64,000 nt of DNA from NCBI GenBank assembly GCA_965637545.1, contig OZ281495.1, positions 7,316,001 through 7,380,000 on the forward strand, given 5' to 3'. Numbering within the stretch: the first letter of the stretch is position 1; every line of letters begins with the position of its first letter. Under the pieces are notes generated by a model. It saw only the letters and a program-made list of their open reading frames with translations, did no database searches and was not told where the DNA came from. Position numbers and translations under genes: made by a program. This DNA is from Phallusia mammillata (lineage: Eukaryota). Shown one piece after another: positions 5,657 through 47,400 of this stretch.

Positions 5657-5970
5657 GGTCACGTCTAAAACTGCGGGGCCACTTGACCCGCCTTATGCAA
5701 TAGAAAAAAACTGCGGGCCCACTTTATCCCGTTCTTGGCCCGCTTCTGGCAAGTATAAAAACTGCTGACCCAGCACTTTATCCCGTGCTTGACCCGCCTC
5801 TCGCAGGGAAAAACTGCGGGCCGGCTTGATCAAGCCGTGGACACGACTGTCACATGTCATTAAAATTTGATTTTGACCAGATCTGAACGGCAATAATTGT
5901 TTGAGGCGGGCCAAGTGCTGGGCCAAGCGGGCCAAGTGATCCAAGTGGGCCATCAGTTTTAGACGTGACC
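5657..5970. mobile_element. MITE-like insertion with 17-bp perfect TIRs
   Basis: GGTCACGTCTAAAACTG / CAGTTTTAGACGTGACC; GC-rich internal repeats (CTGCGGGCC, GGGCCAAG); absent from unit A; no clear TSD. Confidence 0.7.
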
Positions 5971-7039
5971 GCTGTCAGAATTTAAATTTGGTTACGCTTG
6001 ACCGAAAACTTCGCGCTCTGCTGATTTCAAAAAAGCAATTATTTTGATAGAAAAGTTTCACTATTTTCTTCACTGACAAATATATTTTCTATTAAGTGAC
6101 AAACGCAACGTACAAATTTAGTTTTTTTATACTTGTTATCTGCGCAAGGAAGTGTGCTCAACACAACTTCGAAACGCTTTTCTAGCAGCTGCAAAAAAAT
6201 CATGTAAAACTTTTATGTTTTCTACTCGATGGCGAAGTGTAGATTTCCGATTTTTTTTCCGAGGTATTTTCCGAGATTTCCGAGGTTATGGATTTCTTGG
6301 AGTCGTCCCAAAAGGGTTTGGAACTGACTAAATATTTCTTAGCTTTTGAAAGAACGGAAATATTATATTTTTGAAAACTTATTGTGACAAGGTAAGACTC
6401 TTTTCCTGCCGATCTATGAAAAGTTTTTGCACACGAAGATACAGGCATAAATGAAAACAATGTGCACTAATATGACGGCCGCTGCACTGGAGTATAAAGC
6501 TTCGTATCAAGCTTCATTTACCTCATCGAATATATTCTACGAAAACGTCGTTTACATAAGGTTTGAAAAGTCTAGTTTCCAAGTTGCAAATACCACGGTC
6601 GGTGGAATTCTACCGACCCTCGTATTCACAAGCTAGCTAGACAGGTAGCGCTTTTCAAGCTGTGCGGACAGAATCATGCAGTGACATCGGAGTCCAGTCA
6701 GCGGCTGAGAGCGCGGACGACGAAGAGTGGAAGATTTCTCCTGCATTCTACTTTCTCTGTACCAACGATGTGTCGTTCGACTGCAGTAAGCGTTAAAAAA
6801 ATCTACTTGTTACGCTGGTAATGTGTGTAATGTAAAAAAAAATCGAATTTTATGTGCAGTACGGTGCCACGTGGTTACATTTCGTGCTGAATTAGTAGTC
6901 TCTTTAGTACACTATAAGTTATTTGTGGTTATGGCAGCAATTGATTTGATTATAGGTGGCAGTAATAACGATTAGGATGTTTTGATTGGGGTTTCAATAC
7001 ACAAAACGCCACGTTCTTGTTGTGTAAGATCAGTAAACG

Positions 7040-7555
7040 TAAGATTGACCCAGACATGTTAGACAAAGATTGACCCAGACAAAGTTTTTTAAGTTTTTTG
7101 AGCAAACATTTGTGAACAGAAAATCTCTTGAAGATCACATCAGGACACATAAGGAAGCGAGTTTTTCCGAAAATGATGGTGATATTTGCACAGAGAAGAA
7201 ATCAACAAGTAATCAATAAAAAAATTTGTGCTGGCCGACCCCGAAAAAAATCAAGTTGAAATTCAAGAGCACCGTTTCAAATGTGATATTTGTGGAAAGT
7301 CTTTTACTCGAGAATGGAATCGCAAAAGACACATGGTGCAACATGTTGATGACAAACCTTTTCAGTGTGAAACATGCGAAAAACACTTCAAAACGTATGT
7401 TTTGTTAAAAAGCCACTAGTTAATTCATGCACACATTGAATCTTACAAGTGTGGTAGTTCACAGCGACAAGATGCGCTACAAGTGTGATGTTTGTGAAAA
7501 ACCGTTCAAGGGGAAACAGTATGTGAAACTACACAGTAGAAGAAACCACATTTAG
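7040..7555 (+). pseudogene. C2H2 zinc-finger pseudogene (copy of 2373-3512)
   Basis: Start codons mutated (AAGATTGACC versus ATGATGGACC), premature TAG at about 7417, finger 3 and fingers 5-11 deleted. Confidence 0.85.
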
Positions 7556-16859: not shown

Positions 16860-18682
16860 ATGCTGCTGATCAACGTCTTGCGGATCAGCTTTATTTCTTT
16901 TCTGGTGTGGCTTGTACCATGCGCTGTTGCCCAAATGCACCAAGGGTGTACTCTTACCTGTGGAAACCCCATTGACCCAGCTGAAGGTCCCGCGCGTGGA
17001 CCCCCCGGACCCCCCGGACCCCCCGGAAAGGTGGGGCCACCGGGTGATGTTCTTCAATGCAACTGCTCATCAATGCATTCAGCAACAAGAAGAATTTCAG
17101 AACTGGAGGATACAATAAGTAAGTTTTCAAGTTCAACTTAAATGAAGTAAAATAAACTAGAGTTGCTCGATTTGCTTATTGCGTGTTAATCTTGTTGACA
17201 TACAAATCAAATAAACAGTGCATGGAGCAATTCAAATGTACACAAAAGTTGCGCAACATGCTGGTAAACTAGGTTTTCTTTAAAATTTTCAATCGGTTTT
17301 AAAAGAAATTTGGAGATGAATATAGATAATTGTTTTTTACTTTGTGTAGGAAACCTGGCAAGTTTTAAACAAGCTCCAAATCCGTTAAGATCGGATTGCA
17401 GAAGCTGCAAAGACATAAAGCTTGCGGATCCAAGTTCCAGCGATGGGGTTTACGAGTTACGAAGTGAGAGTGGCTACAAGTACCAGGTGTACTGCGACAT
17501 GCAAACTGAAGGTGGTGGTTGGACTCTAGTAGCCTCCGTCCATGAAAACAACATGAGAGAGGGTGGGGGAAGATGCACTAGAGGAGATCGCTGGTCGACC
17601 GAGCAGGGCTGGAAAAAGAAGGGTAACCACGGCGACGGGAATTGGGAGAACTGGAACACCTTTGGCCACTTCGCTTCGGCAACCAGTGATGATTACAAGA
17701 GTCCAGCCTACTTCGAGTTACAAGCGGAAAATCTGATGATTTGGCATACGCCTAATGGTACCCCATTAGTGCAGTATAACACATCGTCGTATCTTAAATA
17801 CCGAACGACAAATGGATTTCTATCTCAGTATGGGGGCAACCTACGGAGTCTGTACGCTGATCGTTATCCGATTGTGTCACAAACTTACAGCTATCCTGCA
17901 GACAACGGACCAAGCCCTCCTGTGGTTTTCGATCGCGGTTCTTCTGCTGAACTCTCCCAACTGCTTCCGCCTAATCTCAAAGTGCATGTTGACGTAGGAT
18001 ATATTCAGGTATTTTCAAAAAAAGTTTATTCCTAAAGTAAAGTGATAACATTTAAAATCCGTAATCATTGAAGACAGTGGTTCCAAGCGTTTTATCGTTT
18101 TTTTTATGGGGTTTAAACTGGGGAGAAAGCCGATTATATAGCATTCAGATTTGAAAGTTCAAAATAAAGGAAACCTTGATAAAACTAGGTTAATTAAGAT
18201 CTTCACCTAACTTAGATTAAACTTGGGGTACAGATAATTGGTCGTGGAGAAGTCTTTAACTAATAGACATCGGATCATCGCCTAATCCGGATAGATTTTT
18301 GGTTCGAACGGGTCCGGATCAATTGAAGTTTACTGTAACTTTTACAATCTGATCACGATCTAAAATCAGGTATCACCCAGGTTTACTACGTAATGTATGA
18401 TCTCCAAGCCTATAATTGAATAATTATTAACTACTTTATTGAAACATGCAGGTCAGGCCCATAAGCTATAATCAAAATGCTTACGCGATTTGCCCCGGAA
18501 CTCGCATGAAGTCAACCTTCGGGTATCCCTCTCAAGCTTGCCTAGGTTCGTCCGGATATACTTTTTTCGAAACCTACTGCGGAGATTTCTCTGGCCTTCT
18601 TCACGATGGAAACGTGCCAGGCGAGGGATGGAGTGCTCAAAAAAAGCTGCTTGAATCGACGTTTTTATTTTTTTACAAATAA
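16860..18682 (+). CDS. ITLN: Secreted intelectin (fibrinogen-related X-lectin) with short N-terminal collagen stalk, about 382 aa, 3 exons
   Basis: Exons 16860-17118, 17350-18008, 18452-18682 (1149 nt, in frame). Signal peptide; GPPGPPGPPGKVGPPG; RSCKDIK; YCDMQTEGGGWTLVASVHENN; GDRWS; GDGNWENWNTFG; ATSDDYKSPAY; CGDFSG; C-terminal FLFFYK. Confidence 0.92.
18290..18338. mobile_element. Possible Tc1/pogo-type MITE end in intelectin intron 2
   Basis: CCGGATCAATTGAAGTTTACTG followed by TA resembles a CAGTA..-type TIR with a TA target; no partner end found. Confidence 0.35.
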
Positions 18683-24753: not shown

Positions 24754-27187
24754 ATGGCAAAGAAAATTGAAGTAAGTTATCGAAGGCATATCAGTTAGTG
24801 CATTTTTGCCTAGTTTTGCGAGCCTAAGTTGTTATTTTGCTATTGTCAGTTGCAAAAGTACGACGCAGAAGAATTTCAGTGTTTTACTGGAAGTGCTGGT
24901 AATCTTGGATCGGGTACTTATGCTGTAGTGATACTTGCAACTCATCAAGTTTTAGGTCAAGTTGCATTAAAGTGTTTTCCTGCTAGGGGTGGCCAAGCTA
25001 TGGAGGAACAGTAAGTAGCATTCTACTTTGTCAAACCTTAAAACTTTTACCTTTGTAAAATTTCCCTACTACACTAGAAATTAATAGCAAAATCAATCGT
25101 TCTATGCTGCTGGTCCGTTTGGAAACGATTTTTAGATTTACCTTGGTTAGTAACGTTTTAACTAGCTGCTGTCACACAGGGTTAAAAGCGAACTTGCCTG
25201 TCTTCAAAGATCAAACAACGAATATATTGTTCGTGTATTTGGCTGGACAGAATGGTCGGGTGGAAATGCTATTATCATGGAGTGTTGCGACTATGGCAAT
25301 CTCACGACTGTATTGTTGAACTCAAACATTGAACTGTCGGTGCCACTTCTTTTGCAAATGTGCACGGAAATGGCAAAAGGCCTGGCACACGTCCATAACT
25401 TTAGCAAGGAAAAACGCATGGTACATACTGATGTGAAGCCAGGCAATGTCCTTCTGGCAAAAGAGTTGCATTGTAGATTATCTGACTTCGGTGGGGCAAA
25501 AATATGTAACTACACAACTGCAGTTACGTCAGCTCCCAATCCCAAACGTGATCAATACACTTTAGCTTATACTGCTCCAGAGGTACTATGCCAACCCAGT
25601 TTGCCTTTGAGAAAAGAGCAAGACACTTATGGTTTTGGAATTACTACCCATATGCTTTTGACCCGACGTTTCCCATTCAATACAGCTAAAGATGTCTTTG
25701 TGGAAGCAGTTAAGTCAGGAATTCGACCTGACACTGCAGAGATTGAGCTCCTGAAGAAAAAATCAAGTGGTAAAGATCTAGAAAGTATTCAGGTGATGGA
25801 AGACGTGATGAAAAAGTGCTGGGAACAAAACCCGGAAGATAGGCCTAATATGTTGGAAGTCGCGAAGCGATTAAGTGAGCAACTGGCCAAATATCAACGT
25901 TTTGAGATTATCAGTAGTGTCATGAAAGCCATGAAACATATGACTCCTGTAGACGATGCTTCAAACCTCACAGGACAATGGGTTTCGCTTGACAGATTTA
26001 TGCCGGAAAGCCGTACTTTCATAGGTGTTCGAGTGCAAGATGACCAACCTTTAGTTGTTGCATCAGAAGGTATGTTCAAAATTCCATATTTAAGTCTGTT
26101 TATCATATAGTGGGCAAAGTCTTTGCTGGTGAGGCGTCTCATAAGCATTTCCATGCTGCAAGGAAAAAGTCAATCATATGGGCAACGCGTTGTTTTCCAG
26201 TTCGTTATTGCTAAATCCCTGGTATAACTATAAATCCCTGGTATATAACTATAAGACATACGTTTACTAATCCTTGTTTCCTAATCTTTCAGATGCAGTG
26301 TTGAAACAACTGCAAGAAGATCCATCTTTTAGAGAAATATTTCATAACGATTGTAAGACGTGTTTCTAGTCTCAAAAACATAGTTTTAAAAGTGTCTAGA
26401 TATTTGACAAGTTTTTGTTTATGTTGTAGTCAAAACGGCTTCATCGCTGATGCAGCGCTACGTGGACTTCGCGACCAACGGCCAATTTAACAACAACTTT
26501 ACTGTGGCATCCGAACTGCTGAGGATCATCGAATCTAGTCCAATATCTGCGGCCGACAGTGCCGAAGTGTACGCCGCAAAGCTTACAAAGAAAAATAAGT
26601 TCCTCCTTGCATTGTTGTTTTACTATATAGCTGGAACTTTGTACAGAAATAAGCGAAACAAATCGTACGCTTTGGACGGAATTGTTCGCTGCTGTGAGGG
26701 GCTTTTTGATGTCAGCGAAATGATGATGGCCCAAGATCCAGCAAACACAAATATACTGTCTAACCTCAGTATCAAATGCATTTACCAGTTGTGTAACATT
26801 GTTGCAAAGCTATCGTCTGTTGACAAGAAAAACAGATGCTTGACTTGGTCTTGGTGCATGTTCTACATGGAGTGCACCTACCATAGCACAAAGGACTGGA
26901 AAAGTATGGAAGCAACGCTGAATGAGGCATTACGAGGTTTAAACACGGTTTTCGGTGGAGAAGTTAAAAGGCAGTTGATCTACGCTCATTGCCTAAACGG
27001 GCTTGGCGTGACATATAAGCACCAGAAAAATTACCAAGCAGCTTGTCAACACTACAAGCAAGCGATAGAAGCGTACAGGCATCTTATTGAGGAAGGCAAC
27101 AAGTCTGAAATGGCAAATTACATTGAATTGGTGCAAAACAATCATCGCAAAGCCGAGCTTAAACTCGTTAAATCTCCACCAACATAA
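24754..27187 (+). CDS. RIPK-like (TKL group) Ser/Thr kinase with C-terminal TPR-like helical domain, about 628 aa, 5 exons
   Basis: Exons 24754-24771, 24850-25010, 25180-26069, 26293-26352, 26430-27187 (1887 nt, in frame). GSGTY, VALK, alphaC Glu (KSELAC), HTDVKPGN, DFG, YTAPE, CWEQNPEDRP; TPR-like YAHCLNGLGVTYKHQKNYQAACQHYKQAI. Confidence 0.85.
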
Positions 27188-27670
27188 ATGAATTTCCGAT
27201 TTTCATATCAATGCGTAAATAAACTTCTAAGTCATTTCTTAATCTGAAATGCACAGTATTTTTTCTTCATTGCAGTTAAACTGCTAAGTTTCACTTTTTA
27301 CATGGTGTTCGTTTAATCACACTTTTGTTAGTTTTTCTTCCATTTTAAAAACACTCACAAAACAGATTTAGCATACACAATAATAAAAGCATGAAAACAA
27401 TTAAATTGTGGTGTGAATTTGAAGCAATCTGGTGCATGCTTTGCTTCGTATATTTGGTAAACGTGTGGTATTCATTATGTAAATCAGACTTGTGTTTGTT
27501 GTTAAAAGTGAGAAATTAGGTCAACCAAAATATCTTGAGAAACACACAACAGTGTTAACAATAAAAAGGGCACTGTTACGATATTTTCTAAAAGCAAAAG
27601 AATGGCACAACTTGGAAACCTGAATGATATGAGTAGTAGTGGTTCGTCCCGGGGCTCCCTCCACCTGTTT

Positions 27671-27788
27671 GGTCCAGTCACCCCCAAGTGGCTACCGCCA
27701 CCTGGTCCCGTCACCCAAGTGGCTACCGCCACCTATTTTGGTCCCGTCACCCAAGTGGCTACCGCCACCTATTTTAGTACAGTCACCT
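27671..27788 (+). repeat. Subterminal 33-36-bp tandem repeats of the Polinton end (mirrored at 38173-38290)
   Basis: GGTCCCGTCACCCAAGTGGCTACCGCCACCT(ATTTT) three times plus a partial copy. Confidence 0.9.
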
Positions 27789-27927
27789 GTTGGTTGATTA
27801 TGTCATGCGGGTATTAATGTGGTCGTATCACCATTGTTCTGTGAGATCGCGACCGGTCGCGAGAGAGAGAGAGGACTAGAGCCGGCGGCGGTTTTTGTCG
27901 CCGTTCGCAAAAGTCGGAACTTGGTTG

Positions 27928-27935
27928 TATATAAA
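27928..27935 (+). promoter_or_regulatory. TATA box upstream of the Polinton ATPase
   Basis: TATATAAA about 45 nt before the ATG at 27979. Confidence 0.5.
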
Positions 27936-27978
27936 GCGTGTGCGTTGATTATTTTGTTAGTCTAGTTTTCATTTGAGA

Positions 27979-28261
27979 ATGGAGTTTATTCATCCATTTA
28001 CGTGTGTTGTTGCGGGTCCGACGGGTTGTGGAAAGACTTTTTTCGTTTCGCGTTTGATAAGTGAGAACTTGGTTACACCGCCTGCGGAGCGTGTGGTTTG
28101 GTGTTACGGTGTAGAATTTGTTCGCGGTCTTTCAACTGAATTTGACTCTTCGAAGAGAACACTTTTGATCATTGACGACTTGATGAGTGAATGCGACAAA
28201 AGCGTGACGAATCTATTTACAAAGGGAAGTCATCATAAGAATATAAGCGTGATTTACATTG
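27979..28261 (+). pseudogene. Truncated Polinton/adintovirus A32/FtsK-like DNA-packaging ATPase, left arm
   Basis: MEFIHPFTCVVAGPTGCGKT (Walker A), LLIIDDLM (Walker B), LFTKGSHHKNISVIYIV; cut by the LTR at 28262. Confidence 0.8.
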
Positions 28262-28828
28262 TGTCACAAATGTGCTATAGACCGACCTCCGATAGTACAT
28301 GACCTAATTCACAGGCGACGTTATCTTGCAATCACCGGACGTTCATTGTGCGTGCCAAGTCTTTTGTTGCAGGCTGCAGCCTCACACTGTCTTTTCCTTT
28401 GTTTTCGCCCAATGTATCAGTCTTATTGTGTCGCCCGTCACTCGCCGCAGCCGTTATTGTTGTAAATGTTCAAGTCCAGCAGAGTTAACGTTTTGACCCT
28501 AGCCATTGTGACTCGAACGATATAAATAGGCCTGTTTTGTAAAACGAGTCATTATAATACAAACTCGCGCTGGTAGAAGTTTATACGGTAGGGCGTTTAG
28601 CGTATGTGTGTTTATACAATTGTAATTTGATATAGTGGTTTAACTTACAATCGTTTACTGTGTCTGTAAGTAATCATATTTCTTGTATGTTGATTCTATT
28701 TGAATAAGGCAATAAAGGTGTAGGAAAAGTGGTTATTGCTGATCAGAGTACACGAGCGTTAGTTGTTAAAGAACTTCCGATAGTCAGTCCCAAATCTTTT
28801 GCGTAACCGTGCAAACGGGAACGTGACA
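28262..28828 (+). mobile_element. Gypsy 5' LTR, 567 bp
   Basis: TGTCAC...GTGACA inverted termini; TATAAA 28521-28526; AATAAA 28711-28716; PBS follows; first 215 bp match 33511-33725. Confidence 0.92.
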
Positions 28829-28830
28829 TC

Positions 28831-28848
28831 TGGGGGCTCGTCCGGGAT
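28831..28848 (+). promoter_or_regulatory. Primer-binding site complementary to the tRNA-Pro 3' end (mirrored at 37113-37130)
   Basis: TGGGGGCTCGTCCGGGAT is the complement of the eukaryotic tRNA-Pro 3' end ATCCCGGACGAGCCCCCA; it starts 2 nt after the LTR. Confidence 0.9.
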
Positions 28849-28896
28849 ACTGACTTAAAAACGCGAAGTTGAACACTAACCCCTGTAAGATCGGCA

Positions 28897-31800
28897 ATGA
28901 TGTCTATAAACCGTTATGTGGAGGCGGAAAAACAGATGGGACTGGTTGACCAAGACTTGCGTCAATACGTCGATGAGCAAATAAATAAGGAAGAAGAACG
29001 TGAGGAAAGGAGACTTAACCGTGAAGCCGAGACTGAGCGAAAGAGACTTGAGATCGAGCTGAGGAAACTTGAGGCCGACGCTGAACAGAAAAGACGTGAA
29101 GATGAGCAAAGAAAACAAGAAAGGGAAGAGCGGCAACAAGTCCGCGAGCACGAACTGGCTATGAAAAAGCTTGAGGTGGAAGATAGACAAAGCCGCGAAG
29201 AGACCAGAAGCACTTCGACAACGTGCAGCAGTAACGCTGGTGCCGGCAAGTGTCCAGAGCTTCCCAAATTTGTGGACGATGTGGATGACATGGACGGATA
29301 TTTGCTGCGGTTTGAGAGATACGCAGAGAATAGCGGTTGGGAGAGAAGCCAATGGGCGCCATGGCTCAGTGCACTGCTGACGGGAAAAGCGATGGGAGTA
29401 TACTCTCGACTGTCAGCAGAAGAGGCCAGGGACTACGAGGTGCTGAAACGTGCGTTGCGGGAACGGTATGGATTACGCGAGGACGGATACCGCCACAAGT
29501 TTAATAATGAAACCCAACAGCAAGGCGAAACGGTTTCCCAGTATTTCGTGCGGTTTGAAAATTACTTGGATAGTTGGGTGGAAATGGCCGGCATCGAAAA
29601 GACCTACAAAGGGCTTAAGGAACTTTTCCTTCGCGAAAAGTTCCACAAAGACAGTTACAAGGAACTGTCGCTGTACATGAGGCAGCACTCATCAAACGAT
29701 TTAAAGGAGTTCGCGGAAAAGGCCGATAGGTTTATTGGGCCGTTAAAAAAGACGATTAGCGGGCACAGCTGCGACACGAAACATCCCCGAGCTGCTGTGT
29801 ATTATTCCAACTGTGGTAGACCAATGCAACCAGGCGCGAGTCATCCTTTGTTGGGCCCCACTGACCGCCGATGCTTTATCTGCAACGCTCAAGGACATAT
29901 TGCAAGAGACTGTCGTTTGAGGAGAACCGAAGAGGGGCCACATCACCAAACAGACAGAGCAGAGAACGCCTTGGTTGTTCAGGTTCGGAACCAGAACCTT
30001 AAGGCGACAATGGGTCGAGTAGGACAGAGATCGGTGGAAACGATTCGCGATACGGGATGTACCTCAGTAGTGATTCGTAGGTCCTTAGTCTCAGATCACC
30101 AACTAACGGGAAAAGTGCAATACGTCCAGGGTTTCAAAGGGAAGGCTGAACCTGCACCGGTGGCGCTCAATACAGTCGACACGCCCTATTACTCAGGTAC
30201 GGTTGAGGCAATTTGCGTGACCGACTTAAACGTCGACCTAATCATTGGCAACGTACCTGGGACCAGAAATTGGGGCTCACCAGATCCAAACTGGAGTGCC
30301 GCACCCGTGGAAACCTGTGCAGTTGTCACACGATCCGCAGCACGTGAGCGGGGCCAAACGAAACCCTTAAGAATATCTGGCTGCAAAGGATTCGACGTTA
30401 TAAATCGGGAGTCTTTTCTACAAGCCCAAAATGAAGATGCATCATTGGATAAGTTTCGGGACAAGTCAGGGACAAGGTCACAGGGCGACGGTCATGTGAA
30501 GTTTGTTCGAAAGGGGAACCTCCTGTACAGAGAGTTCTGGCATCCTAAGTTCAACTATGGAAAGCCAATTCAACAGCTGATGGTTCCTATGGCTTATCGA
30601 TGCAAGATAATGGAGGTAGCTCATGACTCCATGATGAGTGGCCATATGGGTATAAAGAAAACGCTAGACCGCATTCTTAGAAATTTTTACTGGCCTGGTG
30701 TAAGAGGAGATGTTCAACGATTTTGCAAATCCTGCGATGTCTGCCAGAAGACGATTTGCAAGGGGAGAGTTGCAAAAGTTCCACTTCAGAGAATGCCAGC
30801 AGTCGATGAACCATTTAAAAGAGTTGCAGTAGACTTGGTCGGCCCAATTCACCCACCAAGTGAAGAGGGGCATCGCTATTTACTGACTTTGGTCGATTAC
30901 GCCACCCGGTATCCTGAGGCAGTGCCGTTGAAGAACATCACTACAGAGGATGTGGCGGAAGCGTTGGTTGATATTTACAGCAGGGTGGGCATTCCATACG
31001 AGGTGCTATCGGACCAAGGAACCCAGTTCATCTCCAGCTGCATGAGGGAGGTCGAACGGCTTTTAAAGGTGCGCCATCTAAAGACTACTCCGTATTCTCC
31101 GCAATGCAATGGGTTAGTTGAAAAATTTAATGGTACTTTAAAGACAATGCTGAAGCGACTGTGCAACGAGCAGCCGAAGCAATGGCATCGGTATGTAAAT
31201 CCCTTACTGTTTGCTTATCGTGAAGTACCCCAGGAATCCACTGGGTTTGCGCCGTTTGAGCTTCTGTATGGTCGAACGGTCAGAGGACCGCTTCACATCC
31301 TCAAGGACATGTTCACCAACGAGACAACAGATCCAGAAACCATGTGCAGCTACCAATATGTGTTTGAGCTTCGAGAGAGACTGGAAAATACCATGCAAAT
31401 CGCCAAAGAAGCAAGTGTGAGGGCACAAACCAGGTACAAGAAGAATTTTGACCGCAAGGCAAGAAGGCGGACGCTTAAGGAAGGTGATCAGGTTTTAGTT
31501 CTGCTCCCTACCGATAGCAACAAGTTGCTCATGCAATGGAAGGGACCGTTTCAAGTCGAAGGGAAAGTTGGAATCAATGACTACCGCGTAAACGTCAAAG
31601 GTAGTACTAAGCTTTACCACATTAACTTATTAAAGGAATACGTCCAACGAGGATCAACAGAAGAAAATGGATCGACGACAAGCGACGCGCTGGTAATGAG
31701 TGCTTTGTGCCATAATGAAATTCCCGACTCGGTGGACGACGACGAATTGCTGGAGTTAAACTTGGGAACCCACCATGAAACAACCGATGACCTGGTCGTC

Positions 31801-33419
31801 AGTGATTCTCTCACCGACTCACAGAAGCAAGAAGTCAGGAAGATTGTCGAAGCACATGTAGAGGTATTTTCTGAAAAGCCCGGATGCATGAACTTGGTTG
31901 AACACAGTATTCAACTTACCAACGAAAAGCCCATACGATCGAAGCCCTACGCAGTACCTTTTAACGTGCGCGAATCATTACGAAAAGATATTCGCGAAAT
32001 GTTAGACACAGGAGTGATAAGACCTTCAACGTCATCATATGCGTCACCGGTGGTTATTGTTCGAAAGAAGGATGGATCAAACAGGATTTGCATCGATTAT
32101 CGAAAACTTAACAAGGTAACGGTGTTTGATCCTGAACCTATGACAACGGCCCAGGATGTTTTCCACGACTTGAGAGACGACAAGTACTTTTCGACGATCG
32201 ATTTGACTAAAGGATACTGGCAAGTAAAAGTCACTGACTCAGACGTACACAAGACAGCTTTTGTGACACCGGATGGATGCTACGAATTTTGCAAGATACC
32301 ATTTGGGATNNNNNNNNNNNNNNNNNNNNNNNNNNNNNNNNNNNNNNNNNNNNNNNNNNNNNNNNNNNNNNNNNNNNNNNNNNNNNNNNNNNNNNNNNNN
32401 NNNNNNNNNNNNNNNNNNNNNNNNNNNNNNNNNNNNNNNNNNNNNNNNNNNNNNNNNNNNNNNNNNNNNNNNNNNNNNNNNNNNNNNNNNNNNNNNNNNN
32501 NNNNNNNNNGGATGGATGCTACGAATTTTGCAAGATGCCATTTGGGATGAAAAACTCCAGTGCAACGTTTGTACGCGGGATGCGAAAGTTGTTGAAAGGT
32601 ATGAGGAACGTGGAACATTACATAGACGACGTCATTGTACATACGAAAACTTGGGAAGAGCACCTTACGACGCTGCAAGAGTTGTTTAAGCGACTGGCGC
32701 AAGCCCACATAACTGCACGACCAACCAAATGTCTCCTGGGTGCAGGTGATGTTAATTTTCTGGGGCATCACATCGGGAAAAATGTCATTGGCTTGCATCA
32801 GGATAACGTGGAGAAAATAAAAGACGCATCAAGGCCAAGAACCAAAACGGAGGTCAGATCGTTCCTGGGGTTAACCGGCTACTATCGGGACTACATTCCA
32901 AACTATGCCTCTATAGCTGTGCCGCTAACGGATCTTACCAGAAAGGGTCACCCGGATACCGTCGATTGGGGCGACGAACAACAAACAGCCTTTGACAACC
33001 TTAAATCAGTATTGTCAAGCAAGCCAATTCTACATCTACCGGACACTACACGTGAATTTGTTTTACGGACCGACGCCTCATGCGAGGGTATTGGGGCCGT
33101 TCTGCTCCAAATGCACGATGAACAATACTTTCCAATAAGCTATGCGAGTAAAAGGTTATCGAGTGCAGAGCGACGATACTCCACCATCGAGCGCGAATGC
33201 CTAGCAGTCGTATGGGGGGTTAAAAAATTCATGGTATACCTATACGGACGGAAGTTTATCTTGCAAACAGATCATCAACCATTGTCCTTTTTGCAAAACG
33301 CCAAATTTGACAATGACAGAATCATGCGCTGGGCAATGTACCTTCAAAACTTTGACATTCGCTGCGAGTATATTAAAGGATGCGAAAATGTTGGGGCAGA
33401 TTATCTCAGCCGAATGTAA
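28897..33419 (+). CDS. Gmr1-like Ty3/Gypsy gag-pol polyprotein (Gag-PR-IN-RT-RNase H), about 1427 aa if the gap overlap is merged
   Basis: CCHC knuckle CFICNAQGHIARDC; protease DTG; IN HHCC and D,D(35)E (VAVDLVGP, LSDQG, GLVEKFN); GPF; RT CIDYRKLN, MPFG, YIDD; RNase H TDAS, ERECLA, TDHQPL. Merging the 39-bp overlap across the gap gives 4284 nt in frame. Confidence 0.9.
32310..32509. other. Assembly gap (200 N) inside the RT region
   Basis: Flanks overlap: 32271-32309 equals 32510-32548 except one base (A32298 versus G32537). Confidence 0.97.
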
Positions 33420-33510
33420 TTGGGTTTGGATTGCTTGTTATTGTCGCCACATTTGTGTTTGTTTAACGTAAATTTTCTCGAAAGAAACATTTCTTTTAAA
33501 AACGGGTTTG

Positions 33511-33725
33511 TGTCACAAATGTGCTATAGACCGACCTCCGATAGTACATGACCTAATTCACAGGCGACGTTATCTTGCAATCACCGGACGTTCATTGTGC
33601 GTGCCAAGTCTTTTGTTGCAGGCTGCAGCCTCACACTGTCTTTTCCTTTGTTTTCGCCCAATGTATCAGTCTTATTGTGTCGCCCGTCACTCGCCGCAGC
33701 CGTTATTGTTGTAAATGTTCAAGTC
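33511..33725 (+). mobile_element. Truncated Gypsy 3' LTR (first 215 bp only)
   Basis: Matches 28262-28476, then switches at AGTC into the reverse complement of RT sequence. Confidence 0.92.
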
Positions 33726-36700
33726 AGTGACTTTTACTTGCCAGTATCCTTTAGTCAAATCGATCGTCGAAAAGTACTTGTCGTCTCTCAAGTCGTGGAA
33801 AACATCCTGGGCCGTTGTCATAGGTTCAGGATCAAACACCGTTACCTTGTTAAGTTTTCGATAATCGATGCAAATCCTGTTTGATCCATCCTTCTTTCGA
33901 ACAATAACCACCGGTGACGCATATGATGACGTTGAAGGTCTTATCACTCCTGTGTCTAACATTTCGCGAATATCTTTTCGTAATGATTCGCGCACGTTAA
34001 AAGGTACTGCGTAGGGCTTCGATCGTATGGGCTTTTCGTTGGTAAGTTGAATACTGTGTTCAACCAAGTTCATGCATCCGGGCTTTTCAGAAAATACCTC
34101 TACATGTGCTTCGACAATCTTCCTGACTTCTTGCTTCTGTGAGTCGGTGAGAGAATCACTGACGACCAGGTCATCGGTTGTTTCATGGTGGGTTCCCAAG
34201 TTTAACTCCAGCAATTCGTCGTCGTCCACCGAGTCGGGAATTTCATTATGGCACAAAGCACTCATTACCAGCGCGTCGCTTGTCGTCGATCCATTTTCTT
34301 CTGTTGATCCTCGTTGGACGTATTCCTTTAATAAGTTAATGTGGTAAAGCTTAGTACTACCTTTGACGTTTACGCGGTAGTCATTGATTCCAACTTTCCC
34401 TTCGACTTGAAACGGTCCCTTCCATTGCATGAGCAACTTGTTGCTATCGGTAGGGAGCAGAACTAAAACCTGATCACCTTCCTTAAGCGTCCGCCTTCTT
34501 GCCTTGCGGTCAAAATTCTTCTTGTACCTGGTTTGTGCCCTCACACTTGCTTCTTTGGCGATTTGCATGGTATTTTCCAGTCTCTCTCGAAGCTCAAACA
34601 CATATTGGTAGCTGCACATGGTTTCTGGATCTGTTGTCTCGTTGGTGAACATGTCCTTGAGGATGTGAAGCGGTCCTCTGACCGTTCGACCATACAGAAG
34701 CTCAAACGGCGCAAACCCAGTGGATTCCTGGGGTACTTCACGATAAGCAAACAGTAAGGGATTTACATACCGATGCCATTGCTTCGGCTGCTCGTTGCAC
34801 AGTCGCTTCAGCATTGTCTTTAAAGTACCATTAAATTTTTCAACTAACCCATTGCATTGCGGAGAATACGGAGTAGTCTTTAGATGGCGCACCTTTAAAA
34901 GCCGTTCGACCTCCCTCATGCAGCTGGAGATGAACTGGGTTCCTTGGTCCGATAGCACCTCGTATGGAATGCCCACCCTGCTGTAAATATCAACCAACGC
35001 TTCCGCCACATCCTCTGTAGTGATGTTCTTCAACGGCACTGCCTCAGGATACCGGGTGGCGTAATCGACCAAAGTCAGTAAATAGCGATGCCCCTCTTCA
35101 CTTGGTGGGTGAATTGGGCCGACCAAGTCTACTGCAACTCTTTTAAATGGTTCATCGACTGCTGGCATTCTCTGAAGTGGAACTTTTGCAACTCTCCCCT
35201 TGCAAATCGTCTTCTGGCAGACATCGCAGGATTTGCAAAATCGTTGAACATCTCCTCTTACACCAGGCCAGTAAAAATTTCTAAGAATGCGGTCTAGCGT
35301 TTTCTTTATACCCATATGGCCACTCATCATGGAGTCATGAGCTACCTCCATTATCTTGCATCGATAAGCCATAGGAACCATCAGCTGTTGAATTGGCTTT
35401 CCATAGTTGAACTTAGGATGCCAGAACTCTCTGTACAGGAGGTTCCCCTTTCGAACAAACTTCACATGACCGTCGCCCTGTGACCTTGTCCCTGACTTGT
35501 CCCGAAACTTATCCAATGATGCATCTTCATTTTGGGCTTGTAGAAAAGACTCCCGATTTATAACGTCGAATCCTTTGCAGCCAGATATTCTTAAGGGTTT
35601 CGTTTGGCCCCGCTCACGTGCTGCGGATCGTGTGACAACTGCACAGGTTTCCACGGGTGCGGCACTCCAGTTTGGATCTGGTGAGCCCCAATTTCTGGTC
35701 CCAGGTACGTTGCCAATGATTAGGTCGACGTTTAAGTCGGTCACGCAAATTGCCTCAACCGTACCTGAGTAATAGGGCGTGTCGACTGTATTGAGCGCCA
35801 CCGGTGCAGGTTCAGCCTTCCCTTTGAAACCCTGGACGTATTGCACTTTTCCCGTTAGTTGGTGATCTGAGACTAAGGACCTACGAATCACTACTGAGGT
35901 ACATCCCGTATCGCGAATCGTTTCCACCGATCTCTGTCCTACTCGACCCATTGTCGCCTTAAGGTTCTGGTTCCGAACCTGAACAACCAAGGCGTTCTCT
36001 GCTCTGTCTGTTTGGTGATGTGGCCCCTCTTCGGTTCTCCTCAAACGACAGTCTCTTGCAATATGTCCTTGAGCGTTGCAGATAAAGCATCGGCGGTCAG
36101 TGGGGCCCAACAAAGGATGACTCGCGCCTGGTTGCATTGGTCTACCACAGTTGGAATAATACACAGCAGCTCGGGGATGTTTCGTGTCGCAGCTGTGCCC
36201 GCTAATCGTCTTTTTTAACGGCCCAATAAACCTATCGGCCTTTTCCGCGAACTCCTTTAAATCGTTTGATGAGTGCTGCCTCATGTACAGCGACAGTTCC
36301 TTGTAACTGTCTTTGTGGAACTTTTCGCGAAGGAAAAGTTCCTTAAGCCCTTTGTAGGTCTTTTCGATGCCGGCCATTTCCACCCAACTATCCAAGTAAT
36401 TTTCAAACCGCACGAAATACTGGGAAACCGTTTCGCCTTGCTGTTGGGTTTCATTATTAAACTTGTGGCGGTATCCGTCCTCGCGTAATCCATACCGTTC
36501 CCGCAACGCACGTTTCAGCACCTCGTAGTCCCTGGCCTCTTCTGCTGACAGTCGAGAGTATACTCCCATCGCTTTTCCCGTCAGCAGTGCACTGAGCCAT
36601 GGCGCCCATTGGCTTCTCTCCCAACCGCTATTCTCTGCGTATCTCTCAAACCGCAGCAAATATCCGTCCATGTCATCCACATCGTCCACAAATTTGGGAA

Positions 36701-37064
36701 GCTCTGGACACTTGCCGGCACCAGCGTTACTGCTGCACGTTGTCGAAGTGCTTCTGGTCTCTTCGCGGCTTTGTCTATCTTCCACCTCAAGCTTTTTCAT
36801 AGCCAGTTCGTGCTCGCGGACTTGTTGCCGCTCTTCCCTTTCTTGTTTTCTTTGCTCATCTTCACGTCTTTTCTGTTCAGCGTCGGCCTCAAGTTTCCTC
36901 AGCTCGATCTCAAGTCTCTTTCGCTCAGTCTCGGCTTCACGGTTAAGTCTCCTTTCCTCACGTTCTTCTTCCTTATTTATTTGCTCATCGACGTATTGAC
37001 GCAAGTCTTGGTCAACCAGTCCCATCTGTTTTTCCGCCTCCACATAACGGTTTATAGACATCAT
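33722..37064 (-). pseudogene. Inverted, 3'-truncated copy of the gag-pol ORF (Gag-PR-IN-partial RT), still open for 1125 aa
   Basis: ORF-track translation is identical to the + copy for 1114 aa (to VKVTD), then runs 11 aa into antisense LTR (stop at 33687). Confidence 0.9.
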
Positions 37065-37132
37065 TGCCGATCTTACAGGGGTTAGTGTTCAACTTCGCGT
37101 TTTTAAGTCAGTATCCCGGACGAGCCCCCAGA

Positions 37133-37699
37133 TGTCACGTTCCCGTTTGCACGGTTACGCAAAAGATTTGGGACTGACTATCGGAAGTTCTTTAACAACT
37201 AACGCTCGTGTACTCTGATCAGCAATAACCACTTTTCCTACACCTTTATTGCCTTATTCAAATAGAATCAACATACAAGAAATATGATTACTTACAGACA
37301 CAGTAAACGATTGTAAGTTAAACCACTATATCAAATTACAATTGTATAAACACACATACGCTAAACGCCCTACCGTATAAACTTCTACCAGCGCGAGTTT
37401 GTATTATAATGACTCGTTTTACAAAACAGGCCTATTTATATCGTTCGAGTCACAATGGCTAGGGTCAAAACGTTAACTCTGCTGGACTTGAACATTTACA
37501 ACAATAACGGCTGCGGCGAGTGACGGGCGACACAATAAGACTGATACATTGGGCGAAAACAAAGGAAAAGACAGTGTGAGGCTGCAGCCTGCAACAAAAG
37601 ACTTGGCACGCACAATGAACGTCCGGTGATTGCAAGATAACGTCGCCTGTGAATTAGGTCATGTACTATCGGAGGTCGGTCTATAGCACATTTGTGACA
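37133..37699 (-). mobile_element. Inverted complete Gypsy 5' LTR in the right arm
   Basis: Mirror of 28262-28828. Confidence 0.92.
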
Positions 37700-37982
37700 C
37701 AATGTAAATCACGCTTATATTCTTATGATGACTTCCCTTTGTAAATAGATTCGTCACGCTTTTGTCGCATTCACTCATCAAGTCGTCAATGATCAAAAGT
37801 GTTCTCTTCGAAGAGTCAAATTCAGTTGAAAGACCGCGAACAAATTCTACACCGTAACACCAAACCACACGCTCCGCAGGCGGTGTAACCAAGTTCTCAC
37901 TTATCAAACGCGAAACGAAAAAAGTCTTTCCACAACCCGTCGGACCCGCAACAACACACGTAAATGGATGAATAAACTCCAT
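37700..37982 (-). pseudogene. Truncated Polinton packaging ATPase, right arm
   Basis: Mirror of 27979-28261; identical translation in the ORF track. Confidence 0.8.
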
Positions 37983-38424
37983 TCTCAAATGAAAACTAGA
38001 CTAACAAAATAATCAACGCACACGCTTTATATACAACCAAGTTCCGACTTTTGCGAACGGCGACAAAAACCGCCGCCGGCTCTAGTCCTCTCTCTCTCTC
38101 GCGACCGGTCGCGATCTCACAGAACAATGGTGATACGACCACATTAATACCCGCATGACATAATCAACCAACAGGTGACTGTACTAAAATAGGTGGCGGT
38201 AGCCACTTGGGTGACGGGACCAAAATAGGTGGCGGTAGCCACTTGGGTGACGGGACCAGGTGGCGGTAGCCACTTGGGGGTGACTGGACCAAACAGGTGG
38301 AGGGAGCCCCGGGACGAACCACTACTACTGATATGGTAAACACAAGTACAAAGACAAATTTAAATTCCAAAAGAACAAATGTTCCGATGGTGCGATGGTG
38401 CGATCAAGCATCAACTTGTTGCAA

Positions 38425-41400: not shown

Positions 41401-44400
41401 TAAAGTCTTATACATATTTTTCTAGTTGAAAAAAGTTCATCCTTTGAAACCCACCTTTGATCGAAACGTAATATTGTACATGATGATGGCAAAAATAATG
41501 AGGTTGGTAAAAAGAATTGCTCCCACAGGAATAACCACTGAATATAAAAGAGGAGCGGAAGTGATCCAACAGTATCTATCGCTTTTGTAATCTGCAAGGT
41601 CCAATGTGTTTGCCAAAACTGCCACAAAACCAGCTGGAACACCTGCATGAAAATGAAGCTTAAATCAAAGAAGACTATTTTAAATTAATTTGTTTTACAG
41701 GACCTATGCAAACAGCTGGGAATGTAACGACTGCTTTTTGACTTAAAAGGGTGGTAATCATAGCAAATTTCTCTTTTTGCACTAAAGCAAACCACATTTA
41801 GAAACCGCCCTAAAGCAATTCTGATAGCCTAACATCAGCGTTTGTTGCTCGTTGCCAATCACAACCTGTACGAATTCATCAGGGGGAAAGTGGCCAACAA
41901 TAGAATCACAAACTATGCATCTCCACACATAACCAAAAACAGTGCCACATAAGTCATGCCTACACACGCTTGGTGAGATGAAATTTTAACAGTTTAGATT
42001 AAAAGTTCCATTTACGTAGAGAGCTTAAAGCAACCTCGTTTACCCTTTATACACCGATTTGTCAAAACGCTGAAAGCCCCTCGCTTGCACCAGTCACGTG
42101 TGTTACGACATCATTGCCTATAGTTTCCTGATTCGTCGATTAATCACCATGTAGCGTGTGACGAATGTCATAGTTTAAAGGGGTGCGTGTAGGTGAAGTA
42201 AAATTAACCCATTTGTCCTGGCTAAAGCGAGTGTTGTATATCTGTGATTCAGACATCAAATTTAATACAAAGTCAATCTAAAGAAGTCAACGCAATATGT
42301 AGTACAAAGTGTAGTTTGGACATGACTGTTGGGAAATATGGTTTGCCAGCATATTACGTTTCGGGTACTGGTTCTAAACAGGTGGTTTTAGGTTGGGCCC
42401 AGGAAGTCGACTATGTAGTTTTTTCGCATAATTTCAGAAAATTCTGTTTTCAGGAAACATACTTCAGGCCAAATGGCACATTGTCTTTGTTTGCTCAAAA
42501 TGTAACTGGTCAACGGTATTCTTTCAGTCGGAATAGTGGTTTATGTGATGGATTGAGAACTACAGGTATCGGGTACCATGACGTTATGAAAACCCACCCA
42601 AGCTTACTGTTAAAACAGCTTTTCAGTAGGTTGCTTGCAATTAAGTAAGCGATACCCGCATATCTATCGGTGTTTTCACATGACATCAATTTCCATACTA
42701 AAGTCTTACCGTAACACAAAACAGATGCAATCCAAATAAATCTATTTTCGTGTCCACTTCCTGTTTTCGCGAGAACCAGGGTTCGAAAGAGCAGTACAGC
42801 TTCTGCCAACATCCATGCCCACGAGAGGAGGACTGCATAATGGAGGATAACAGTAATGACAAAACAAAACGTGGGAAATTCCATCCGCTCGATTCCGATC
42901 AGGAATGCAATGTTGAGGAAAAGAAGAGAGCAACATAGATGGATCAACACTTGTTGGGGCAACTTGCTTCTTAAATGCCTGTAGAATTACAATGGACAAC
43001 AGTTTGAATATATGCGTGCGACTCGGTAAACTTTTAAAGCAAACTATAAGAAATAAAGGTATTTAAATACACACACAAAAATATAAAAATTTGAAATTAT
43101 GTAATTCCCTCTTATTGCATTCTCGAGGTTTTGTTAACTATTTGTTAACCAAGCCTAAATGGTACGCATTCTGATAAGCATTGAAGTATTATTGTACTAG
43201 AAGTGCTTACAAATTAAAAAGTCTCCCATTACAACCGGTGTCACAAAACCTCAATGCAAATGGCAGTATTTAAACTTTGCAAAACTGAAAGGTTGAAGTG
43301 CATAAAAGTGACTTAGAACTTCAAACTCCCTAAATCAGGGGTGGGCAACCTTTTTCACTGTGGGGCCAAATACAATTGCGATGATTAGATCACGGGCCGC
43401 ACCTTTATGTAAAATAAGGTGATTTTACTCCGTTGCATACCAAAAATGCCTTGCTACAAGTAAAATTCGCATTTAATTCAAGCAGCGTATTGTCAGGTCG
43501 TAGAAAATAGCACCTGGCGCACTAATCCGCTCAAAAAAATATAAAGTTGGACTCGTTTGCCATAACATTTGAAATCCAAGTGTCTCTGCGGGCCGCACAA
43601 CTTTAATCAAAGGGCCGCATGTGGCCCGCGGGCCTGCAGGTTGCCCACCCCTGCCCTAAATGATTCGATCAAAATAACAGTCATTGTGTGTTATAGAATA
43701 GCTTGCCATGTGTAATGTTTTATGGTGCTTTTGAGAAACAGGGGTTTTGATTTTCCTAAGCTAGGGATTTGTGACTTACTTGAAATAAAGATAAGTAAAT
43801 ACGGTTGCTAGGAGGCAAGCAATTGAAACTGAACAACCAGCGATGGTAAGGGAAATGAGGTAGGGAGGGTGATAGAATTCATCTATACTCTGTAAAAGAA
43901 AAATGCATTTAATATCTGTATCGCAAAGGGAAATACATTTGTAATTTTAAAACACGCAAGATTGGTAGAAACTGTGATGCATTTATAATAATTACAGGAT
44001 AGCTATACAGGCATTTTAACGTTTCACAGCAGTAAAATTCTACTAAACAGCGCAACACAGCCATTTCCTACTTAATTTACATATAAACAAAAGACAACTC
44101 TTTCGAAACTTGGCAAAGCATAGCCAGTTAAAACTAACTTCAAAACAATTTTGACATTTACTCACCAAAATCACGCCAAACGGTGTCATGTGATTGCACG
44201 AGCACGTGATTAGTTCGTACCCATCCGTGACGTTTTCACGTGATTCCATTTCGCATCCAGCCTCGGACCACAAATCGCTGTTTAAATCCCAATAAACACA
44301 CTTTACAGTGGCTCGTCGCTGCATGACGTCGCTTGACGTGTTTGTGACGTCACTTGAAAAATTCCCGCTTCGTGTTAGCGGCACCACGTGGCGAGTTATC

Positions 44401-47400
44401 ACCGCTGAGCTGAGGTCTTTCATCTCGGCGTTTTTCACCTCGACGGACAAAACGTGACTAATGACGTCGCTTGTCACGTGACGCGTCGGGCCTTCACCAA
44501 ATGTGTTACCGACCACTTGATTTTGCTGCTCCACAAAAAGGGAGTTTTTTCGGTAAAGGACTGCGCCAACTTGAAGTGTATTAAGATTGTACTTGTTGCG
44601 AGCCTCGTGTAGAAGATTGTGGGAGAGATAAACTTCACTGGCTTGTTGTTCTAAGCCACTAACTGGTTCCCCTAAAGTTGTACCTCCTTCTCCAGTATAC
44701 TCAGCTTCATTAGTCAGGTCCTCGATTTCAATACCGACATTTTTGCGATTGATTCTCAAGTTACCCTAACACACAACACAGATTACATTGCATAACTGTA
44801 CACATCAATCTGACTTTTGTCTTAGATTTATTTTAATTAAACTTTTTAATTCTAAGAAGTTCTTGTGCTTGACAATTTTCTTTATTTCCATTGAATAATG
44901 TGACAAGGATTACCCAGTTAAATTATTTTAACTAAACTTTTTAACTTCAAGAAGTACTGGTGCTAGACAATTTTTTTTTTAGTTCCATAATGCTGACTTA
45001 CTTCGTAAACATGAAAATTATCATTGAATATTAAATATCACAAACCTGTGACACGTTATAGTGATTGGTGACGGTTTCGACGGCAACAAGCACGTCATGG
45101 GAAGATTGTTCGTCAAAGTTTTGCGATGAAACGTCAAGAAGTGTGCTTAGTTGACTTGAAAGTAAGCTTACAGTCCCCTGGTTTATGTTTGTTTTGTTCT
45201 GGAGTCCGACTATTGACTGTGTTAGTTCTTTAGCTTGAAGCGGGGTGTAAGTTGTAGGGTCTGAAAAAGTAAGTAAATAAGGCAATGAATTGGTTATTGC
45301 TTTCAAAGTTAATTGGGAAGTCAATTAGAATACTACTTGACGTATCAAAACAACTAGTTTGTACATACTCCCTAAAACCAAAAATGACAACAGCGTTATT
45401 GTGTATTATCTAGGACAGTGTTTATCATTTTTTCCAGCGAACGGAGTATATTCGTAGTATTGGAAAGGCAAAGAAAGCTTTTTTTTATGCCACAAAGTTG
45501 TAAGTCGTGCCAGGCCGGGTTTGAGCTCAGGTTTCTTCAAAAAACGGGCTTGATTCGGGTCTGACTTTACACATTTTTTTAAATAAATTTACTTAGCTAA
45601 GTAGCCAATTGCTTGACCTGATCTAATGTCAAACAGTCCTAAAACGCTTTATTCACGACCAATTGTCTATTGCGTTTGTTGTCTTGGTCTTTCCTGAGGC
45701 TTTAATGTGCATGCCTGTCGATCAAACTTTTGGATCTAAACTGGCTAATTTTCAAAAAATGATTCGGGTTTAAGCCGGGTTTTGGGCTCGTACTTTCAGG
45801 TTCGGACTCGTTTACAACTCTGGTATGCCACAAGACTATCACGAACTTTTCTTCGTTAGAGATAACAAATTAGTCCTATATAATTGTCTACAAAACCCGA
45901 TCGCGGGCACACTAATGTGCGAACCTATCGCTTATAGACACATATAATACATTATAACTAAACGCAATGATCCTTAAATATAAATAATAGACATGAAGGT
46001 AAATGGCCGTGTTGTTTTAAGTTGGGATGAAAACAAATTTCGCTCTTTTTTCTCTTACCCTGGTCTTGGCATATGAAAGCGCTATATGTATCACAGTAAG
46101 TATCATCCCATTTCCAGGTTTTATCTCCCCACAACTGAACACAAAATGCACCGACTGTCCTTGGCTCTGCCCTAGCCCAGTTGCTGTAACTGTGAAAAAA
46201 CAGATATAGTTAATAGTGACAGTAACCAGCGGTGATCTAATACACTTATGTTTTTTTTACGGAAACCGGAATATCAACCTAATCCCAGGCATATTTATCA
46301 AAAAGCTGTTAAAATATATTTCAAAGATGTTACATGCGCCTATAATTCAAAGATGTTACATGAGTTCAAAACTTAAATNNNNNNNNNNNNNNNNNNNNNN
46401 NNNNNNNNNNNNNNNNNNNNNNNNNNNNNNNNNNNNNNNNNNNNNNNNNNNNNNNNNNNNNNNNNNNNNNNNNNNNNNNNNNNNNNNNNNNNNNNNNNNN
46501 NNNNNNNNNNNNNNNNNNNNNNNAGAGTTGTAGGGGCAAGCAATATGTAAATTTTAAAGTCTACAATGACTTCCTGTTATCTCTGTCTGGTTAACATAAA
46601 GATACACCACATTGCCAAAAGTAATAATTTCATCCCCAGCAAAATCGGGTCATTGTGAAAACATTGTGAGCAATTTTATCGCATGGTAATTAGTAATCAC
46701 ATGTCATGAATCTTCACCCTTTAACTCAAGCCCTACGAAAAGGGGTATGTGTTGCACTAGGGCAGTGGTCGTCAACCTATGGGTCGCGACCCCAAGTAGA
46801 GTCGCCTAAACTTTTTCTGGGGTCGCAATAAGTCGCTTTAATTTATTGCATTTTAAAATTGATTGCAGAAAATAAAACTAATATTATGTTCTTTTAGATC
46901 GCAACTTTTGCTCTTGTTTTGTGGTACAGCTTGCTACCTCGTGTTGCAATTAAATCGTGGTAGTGAAAAAAGCACAAAATGCCTTTATCGCGTAACAATG
47001 GGTTTGGACAACGTGAATTATGACTTAACACTATAAGTTTGTATTATTTAAGGTGACACCAGAATGAGTGAATAGTTATTTATGTAACGTACCCTACTAT
47101 GTCAAATTTTTCTAATCCCGTTTTCAACCACGTGGCTGTGTAAAGCAGGATTTAGTGCAACGAGTGTATTAGAAACGAAACATCGTAATCGATTGGAAGT
47201 GGAGCATGACATGCGGTTAAGCTTGTGCAAAGTCAAGCCGCGGCTTCAAAAACTTGCGGACAGTATACAGGCGCAACCATCTCACCAACAGTGCAAACTA
47301 AGTGTTGAACAATTTGACAAGTTTGTGTTCCGAAAATTGGGTTTATGTCTTAAATGAAACGCCTTAAAATTTATTTTCGTAATACTTTTGTATAGCCATT

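Follow-up and report, generated by a model that had tools for sequence, protein, structure and literature searches.

How could a retrotransposon come to lie between two copies of one and the same end of a virus-like DNA element? This question is raised by a stretch of 64,000 nucleotides (nt) of the Phallusia mammillata genome (assembly GCA_965637545.1, contig OZ281495.1, positions 7,316,001 to 7,380,000 of the forward strand; hereafter the window, with positions counted from its first base), in which the assembly draws a Polinton/Maverick-type element as two mirror-image arms that consist mostly of a Ty3/gypsy retrotransposon. A first-pass annotation of this DNA had proposed that the entire composite was inserted here as a unit by a Polinton integrase acting in trans. 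Our analysis shows that a Polinton/Maverick-type element integrated once at this site, as seen from its GATATG target-site duplication (TSD) and its (AGT)3/(ACT)3 ends; that a young Gmr1-type retrotransposon integrated in the packaging-ATPase gene, 627 nt from one end; and that the CA end of the 3' long terminal repeat (LTR) of this retrotransposon is connected, at a second joint, to the reverse transcriptase (RT) region of an inverted copy. The second "same-end" arm, on the other hand, may not be present in the chromosome as drawn: our leading and still tentative reading, with a probability of roughly 40%, is that the assembly doubled a single arm.

The Polinton-type ends and the mirror arms

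The boundaries of the composite and the features of its Polinton-type ends are as follows.

27632-38329: Polinton-type composite element, about 10.7 kb as assembled, delimited by its ends and TSD
27626..27631, no strand: left TSD copy, GATATG, by direct sequence comparison
38330..38335, no strand: right TSD copy, GATATG, by direct sequence comparison
27632..28258, + strand: Polinton/Maverick-type end, recognised by its (AGT)3 terminus, subterminal repeats, TATA-like box and the length of the TSD
27979..28257, + strand: packaging ATPase stub, A32/IVa2-like, 93 codons (Pfam Adeno_IVa2, Pox_A32)
37703..38329, - strand: mirror copy of the Polinton-type end, including an ATPase stub at 37704-37982 and an (ACT)3 terminus on the + strand

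The left terminus starts at 27632 with AGTAGTAGT, that is (AGT)3, and the right terminus runs up to 38329 with ACTACTACT, that is (ACT)3, so that AG...CT termini of the (AGT)n//(ACT)n type are present together with a 6-bp TSD. The same 6-mer is expected at two random window positions in only 0.04% of cases (0.0004), which rules out a chance origin of the TSD. Mavericks are known to carry (AGT)2//(ACT)2 ends and perfect 6-bp TSDs (PMC8097293), the TSD range of the family being 5-8 bp (PMC8097293, PMC10748475). The ends, the duplication and the ATPase stub support the assignment to this family made in the first-pass annotation. Lone copies of AGTAGTAGT and ACTACTACT also occur at window positions 39066 and 20709; their surroundings have no similarity to the element ends, and single end-motif 9-mers of this kind are at chance level for 64 kb. 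Just inside the terminus we observed a subterminal 36-nt repeat (27653-27788, 3.9 copies, with an 18-nt sub-period; mirror copy at 38174-38308), which could provide putative protein-binding sites.

Further inward, a TATA-like box lies about 45 nt upstream of the start of the ATPase gene. The ATPase stub scores 28 bits against Adeno_IVa2 (cut-off 21) and also matches Pox_A32, both pointing to a P-loop ATPase, and an exhaustive profile search with it returned 2,233 relatives at E<=0.001. Full-length relatives measure 204-260 amino acids (aa) with 52-63% identity, and the stub matches their N-terminal ~110 residues; one in-frame stretch common to all aligned relatives (8/8) is absent from it. A single relative bears a name, and it stems from a mayfly genome. 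The gene is broken once, by the retrotransposon that terminates the stub 627 nt from the element end. The first-pass annotation had placed a Gypsy insertion near one Polinton end, and this Ty3/gypsy element of the Gmr1 type interrupting the ATPase gene is that insertion. A search of the PDB with the 93-aa stub gave generic P-loop matches only. Two further proteins, P0123 (2,762 aa) and P0124 (1,866 aa), match the stub in 22-27 separate stretches and appear to be built of many tandem P-loop-like modules.

No polymerase, Polinton integrase, protease or capsid gene was found between the ends or elsewhere in the window, in open reading frames (ORFs) or by Pfam, and the sole rve domain in the window belongs to the retrotransposon. 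The only Polinton gene left is represented by the first 93 codons of the ATPase, and the element as assembled is at best a non-autonomous remnant.

We found the ends, the 6-bp duplication and the two mirror arms of 4,608 bp exactly where the first-pass annotation had placed them. Inward extension, a repeat finder and BLAST alike show 27632-32239 to be the reverse complement of 38329-33722 across all 4,608 nt (0 mismatches), and the full alignment bears out the earlier impression that the arms do not differ. Complementarity ends abruptly at offset 4,608, and it leaves a non-mirrored middle of 1,482 nt between the arms, which makes the turning point asymmetric. Each arm contains the 627-nt Polinton-type end with the ATPase stub, an LTR, gag, a zinc knuckle, protease, integrase and a partial RT that covers the first 86 of the 205 positions of the Pfam RT profile. 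Both termini are accordingly drawn in the assembly as derivatives of the same Polinton end, as had been claimed. The inverted terminal repeats (TIRs) as drawn span 4,608 nt, compared with about 50-1,500 bp in the family, whose true TIR length would not be apparent from two identical arms.

The host DNA beyond both ends of the element shows no mirroring; the structure is therefore not a simple fold-back read. Together with the asymmetric turning point, the unmirrored flanks rule out both a fold-back chimeric read and a reversed allelic contig as its source.

The retrotransposon copies and the joint between them

The features that lie between the two Polinton-type ends are listed here.

28260..28472, + strand: 5' LTR of the + copy, TG...CA, 100% identical to the 3' LTR
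28897..33419, + strand: gag-pol ORF of the + copy, open to the left and to the right of the N run (0 stops, 0 frameshifts seen)
32310..32509, no strand: assembly gap of 200 N, whose flanks repeat 39 nt directly
33509..33721, + strand: 3' LTR of the + copy, following a purine-rich tract; its CA end adjoins the right arm
33722..37702, - strand: inverted, 3'-truncated second retrotransposon copy, truncated once, where it meets the 3' LTR of the + copy

On the + strand the retrotransposon is complete (28260-33721) and has direct LTRs of 213 nt that are 100% identical. Its gag-pol encodes, by Pfam, gag, a CCHC knuckle, protease, integrase (H2C2, rve, SH3), RT and RNase H in this order; Integrase_H2C2 and rve fall at residues 563-735, RVT_1 begins at residue 1055 and RNase H lies in the second ORF piece. 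An integrase upstream of RT in a gypsy-like pol is the hallmark of Gmr1, a group known from cod and Ciona (PMC8220671), and by this feature the retrotransposon is, as far as its predicted domains tell, a Ty3/gypsy element of the Gmr1 type, a placement made from domain order and nearest relative. The nearest relative is a Ciona intestinalis protein of 1,423 aa (P0003): the left ORF piece (28897-32307) aligns with its residues 1-1133 at about 67-68% identity, and the right piece (32511-33416) with residues 1122-1423, its last residue, at 81%. As for priming, no 8-14-nt complement of the post-LTR sequence was found within the LTR as a self-priming site, and no tRNA-type site was recognised.

A 218-nt block (28259-28476) that includes the 5' LTR recurs with 100% identity twice, by repeat finder and BLAST: directly at 33508-33725 and inverted at 37485-37702. 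The inverted copy retains its 5' LTR (37489-37701) and, from gag onward, the coding region as far as position 86 of the 205-position RT profile; apart from its truncation it is open (ORF 33687-37064). The symmetric layout described in the first-pass annotation is thereby only partly upheld. The mirror arms are indeed identical; the whole, in contrast, is a complete retrotransposon with two LTRs followed by an inverted copy that is truncated at its 3' end. Three features had been overlooked, namely the third, direct LTR copy at 33508-33725, the start of the arm at a CA end and the overlap between the flanks of the N run. The insertion of a single retrotransposon into a small palindromic Polinton derivative was also considered, and it was rejected: the ATPase stub on the right adjoins the start of a 5' LTR, not the end of a 3' LTR.

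Position 33722, the first base past the terminal CA of the + copy's 3' LTR, is where the right arm starts. The probability that a free template switch or break lands within one base of an LTR end is about 3 in 10,000, and a random snap-back or microhomology turning point was rejected because the arm starts precisely there; the only "microhomology" at the joint is 4 nt in common with the sequence after the 5' LTR, and the arms extend no further. Since integrase joins exactly this CA to its target, we infer that the joint was made by the integrase of the retrotransposon itself. The turning point hence carries the signature of a retrotransposon integrase and not that of a random snap-back. Such a joint could have been produced by two routes. 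A second copy could have nested in the first in the opposite orientation, or the element could have undergone autointegration, in which its reactive CA ends would attack its own DNA. The latter is an established side reaction of retroelements and yields inverted products (PMC2644782). No TSD surrounds the complete + copy (the 4-5 nt before its 5' LTR differ from those after its 3' LTR), which is consistent with an inverted joint made by integrase; its flanks are the ATPase stub on one side and the inverted copy of the retrotransposon on the other. The location of the inner joint on the LTR CA end is the finding that stands under every reading of this locus.

The non-mirrored middle contains the 200-N run, and it could be asked whether this run conceals further DNA. 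Positions 32271-32309 and 32510-32548 form a direct repeat of 39 nt with 1 mismatch in the same codon register; the variant base (32298 versus 32537) makes the difference between an Ile and a Met codon, and the Ciona relative has Met. The Pfam RT profile is matched at positions 1-122 to the left of the run and 112-205 to its right, and the two ORF pieces overlap by 12 residues on P0003 and together cover its full length. The second contig (32510 onward) contains each retrotransposon position just once. Most likely, to judge by this overlap, the N run marks a failed join of two contig ends that share 13 codons and were left unmerged owing to one variant base, and it seems to hide nothing detectable. 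If the 39-nt overlap is real, the element measures about 10.46 kb rather than 10.70 kb. A second N run in the window (46379-46523, 145 N) has flanks without overlap, unlike the 200-N run.

Missing real sequence in the gap is unlikely, since its flanks overlap in sequence and frame as well as in RT profile position and alignment to P0003. An arrangement of hidden DNA, for example two retrotransposon-bearing Polintons placed tail to tail, would draw on the fact that the length of an N run is only an estimate and on the single base at which the 39-mers differ, which could stem from two copies. It is opposed by the continuity of codon register and RT-profile position, by the way in which the pieces span the entire 1,423-aa relative with their 12-residue overlap, and by the single representation of each retrotransposon position in the second contig, and we consider it very improbable.

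Origin of the second arm

The first-pass annotation had argued that, since one TSD brackets everything, the whole must have been integrated in trans. This does not follow: the ordinary integration of a full-length Polinton, with its interior later rearranged in place or mis-assembled, would leave the same TSD. Nor were the parental Polinton and further copies of the composite with different TSDs, which that view anticipated, encountered; BLAST revealed no second copy of the composite or of a Polinton within the 64-kb window, and exact-protein look-ups with the junction-spanning ORFs of the element (33687-37064 and 27979-28302) gave no record of another copy. The corresponding look-ups with the host ORFs at 26450-27187 and 25277-26110 found no independent assembly on record.

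In the reading that we tentatively prefer, the locus would contain two pairs of identical inverted repeats, one formed by the Polinton termini and the other by the two copies of the retrotransposon. An assembler of the path-based or gap-closing kind could then have entered through the terminal repeat at the right flank and left on the path of the other end, thereby drawing the ATPase stub, LTR and gag a second time. Alternatively, two allelic or flip-flop isomers of the element may have been merged into one sequence, which would give the same picture. The remainder of the Polinton, with its polymerase, integrase and capsid genes and the C-terminus of the ATPase, would in either case sit in unplaced contigs. 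We suggest, with the same reserve, that no retrotransposon would then have moved here without reverse transcription, and that a locus of nested transposons has been drawn as a palindrome.

Several observations are in line with a doubling by the assembler. All 4,608 positions of the arms agree, the 627-nt Polinton end among them, as if one path had been used twice. Two contigs end inside the element and differ by one base in their 39-nt overlap, so that two or more slightly different templates for this region must have been present among the reads. The right arm starts directly past the LTR CA and no matching TSD surrounds the + copy; the flanks of the retrotransposon are thus chimeric, as would be expected from collapsed or nested copies. 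Intact Mavericks/Polintons measure 12.7-24.6 kb and have TIRs of 46-1,447 bp (PMC8097293, PMC10748475). Against this range, the mirror "terminal repeat" of 4.6 kb exceeds the longest recorded Maverick TIR more than threefold, and the element with its 10.7 kb is smaller than any intact one and has lost its core genes save the ATPase stub. The failure of both the window search and the exact-protein look-ups to yield a second composite or Polinton copy fits this reading as well.

A number of points weigh in the other direction. The supposed wrong turn of the assembler is deduced from the assembled sequence alone. A single-copy segment of 627 nt is not easily drawn twice by an assembler that uses each read in one place only. 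The contig ends are collinear and the ORF is continuous across the gap, which makes the middle of the structure coherent. If the gap sizes are mate-pair estimates (the other N run has 145), 200 N would fit a compact element of about 10.5 kb. Finally, large palindromes cause breaks in coverage, and a real palindrome would also give a near-central gap.

The collinearity of the ORF and the overlap of the contigs also count in favour of a second explanation, in which the mirror image truly exists and was formed in place by local rearrangement of an integrated Polinton. A Polinton would have integrated first and a retrotransposon would have entered its ATPase gene; an integrase-made inverted joint, formed either through a nested inverted copy or by the insertion of one LTR end into the ATPase gene and of the other into the retrotransposon's own DNA, would then have created an inverted retrotransposon repeat of about 4 kb. 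Repair of a break inside the Polinton could then have copied the left end in inverted orientation, with its anchors in retrotransposon homology on one side and in terminal-repeat homology on the other. The interior of the Polinton would thereby have been replaced by a copy of the left end, and the original 6-bp duplication would have stayed where it was. This sequence of events covers every joint without any movement of the composite (the TSD, the CA joint, the missing TSD of the + copy, the identical arms and the loss of genes), and self-attack by a CA end with inverted products is established (PMC2644782). The multi-step repair pathway, however, is deduced from its end product only; we found no described precedent for a Polinton remodelled in this manner; and the repeats that would drive the process in the cell are also those that mislead assemblers. 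We regard an origin in place as possible but doubtful.

The remaining explanation is a refined form of that given in the first-pass annotation, in which the composite is a mobilised copy-back (snap-back) mini-Polinton and the retrotransposon moved as DNA cargo. A parent Polinton with the retrotransposon and a nested inverted joint would have replicated as linear, protein-primed DNA; a displaced single strand would have paired with itself along the 4-kb inverted repeat and used its own 5' end as template, which would give two identical, origin-bearing left ends; and the integrase of a helper Polinton would have inserted the 10.5-kb molecule here with a 6-bp duplication. The identical arms are what such self-copying predicts. 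The termini and the 6-bp duplication bracket the whole structure, and both ends are drawn as copies of one end, down to a promoter-proximal ATPase stub, which a normal right end is not expected to have. The nearest analogue is offered by the incomplete particles of adenovirus, whose genomes reportedly carry left-end inverted duplications (Daniell 1976). Defective genomes of the copy-back and snap-back kind form a known class (PMC13506859), and protists provide known cases of retrotransposons nested in endogenous virophages (PMC8547959). A single TSD, however, cannot separate this explanation from a local origin. A free snap-back is not expected within one base of the LTR CA, and the position of the turning point therefore requires a parent in which the nested inverted joint was present beforehand. 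Neither the window nor the exact-protein look-ups yielded a parent Polinton, a polymerase or Polinton integrase gene, or a second composite; the explanation needs the most separate events, and the same caveats about the assembly apply to it. We consider it unlikely. Taken jointly, an assembly product and a rearrangement in place make it probable that the composite did not transpose as a unit.

Genomic setting and comparison with known systems

Directly upstream of the insertion lie a protein-kinase ORF and a TPR ORF (25277-26110 and 26450-27187, + strand); the search with the kinase ORF gave no close match, its best relative being 51% identical. The TPR stop codon is 445 nt from the TSD, and the element therefore sits either within the 3' region of a kinase-TPR gene or downstream of it. 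Elsewhere in the window we observed a C2H2 zinc-finger ORF of 435 codons with at least 10 fingers, situated beside diverged tandem paralogous DNA (27-974, 2205-3512 and 5474-7381; 81-91% identity) and with a best zinc-finger protein match of 48%; a fibrinogen-C-like ORF at 17310-18035; and exons of an adhesion-type G-protein-coupled receptor-like gene (7tm_2, GPS motif) at 42513-42962 and 44046-44759 on the - strand.

What the locus means depends on which of the readings holds. Should the composite be real and have moved as a whole, it would represent the first defective copy-back Polinton in an animal to have served as a DNA vehicle for a retrotransposon, and it would provide indirect evidence for linear protein-primed replication of Polintons in animals. 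A real composite that formed in place would indicate that a retrotransposon integrase and Polinton terminal repeats can together gut and mirror a virus-like element. If the second arm is a product of assembly, the site would be an ordinary one of nested transposons and a warning that TIRs and young retrotransposons can be drawn as palindromes.

With the animal Polintons/Mavericks of vertebrates (PMC8097293) and nematodes (PMC10748475) the element shares the end motif, the 6-bp TSD and the A32/IVa2-like ATPase gene. It differs from intact Polintons in its 10.7-kb length, in its lack of polymerase, integrase, protease and capsid genes, and in 4.6-kb "terminal repeats" that are mostly retrotransposon. 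The retrotransposon in turn resembles Gmr1-type elements (PMC8220671) in its TG...CA LTRs, its one gag-pol ORF and its domain order, and it is 67-81% identical to a Ciona intestinalis protein of equal length. Unlike typical members of the group, its complete copy has no TSD, its 3' LTR adjoins an inverted and truncated copy of itself, and no primer site was recognised.

The inner joint, in which an LTR CA is connected in inverted orientation to an internal site of the same element, is like that of autointegration products (deletion and inversion circles; PMC2644782). Such products are dead-end extrachromosomal circles, whereas the joint described here is chromosomal and has a copy of a Polinton end on each side; an identical joint would be expected from a nested second copy. 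With copy-back/snap-back defective viral genomes (PMC13506859) the structure has in common that both ends come from one end and that the middle is not mirrored. Those genomes, however, are free and replicate in infections, and here there is one chromosomal copy as assembled, which turns at an LTR end. A further parallel is offered by the Ngaro retrotransposons in mavirus-like virophages of Cafeteria (PMC8547959), which are likewise nested in a Polinton-related element, including its genes and terminal repeats. The Cafeteria case differs in its protist host, in its tyrosine-recombinase retrotransposons, in virophage genomes that are otherwise intact and in the lack of a mirror duplication. The parts of the Phallusia locus belong to known kinds, a Polinton remnant and a Gmr1-type retrotransposon, and its mirror layout, if real, would be an unusual variant of them.

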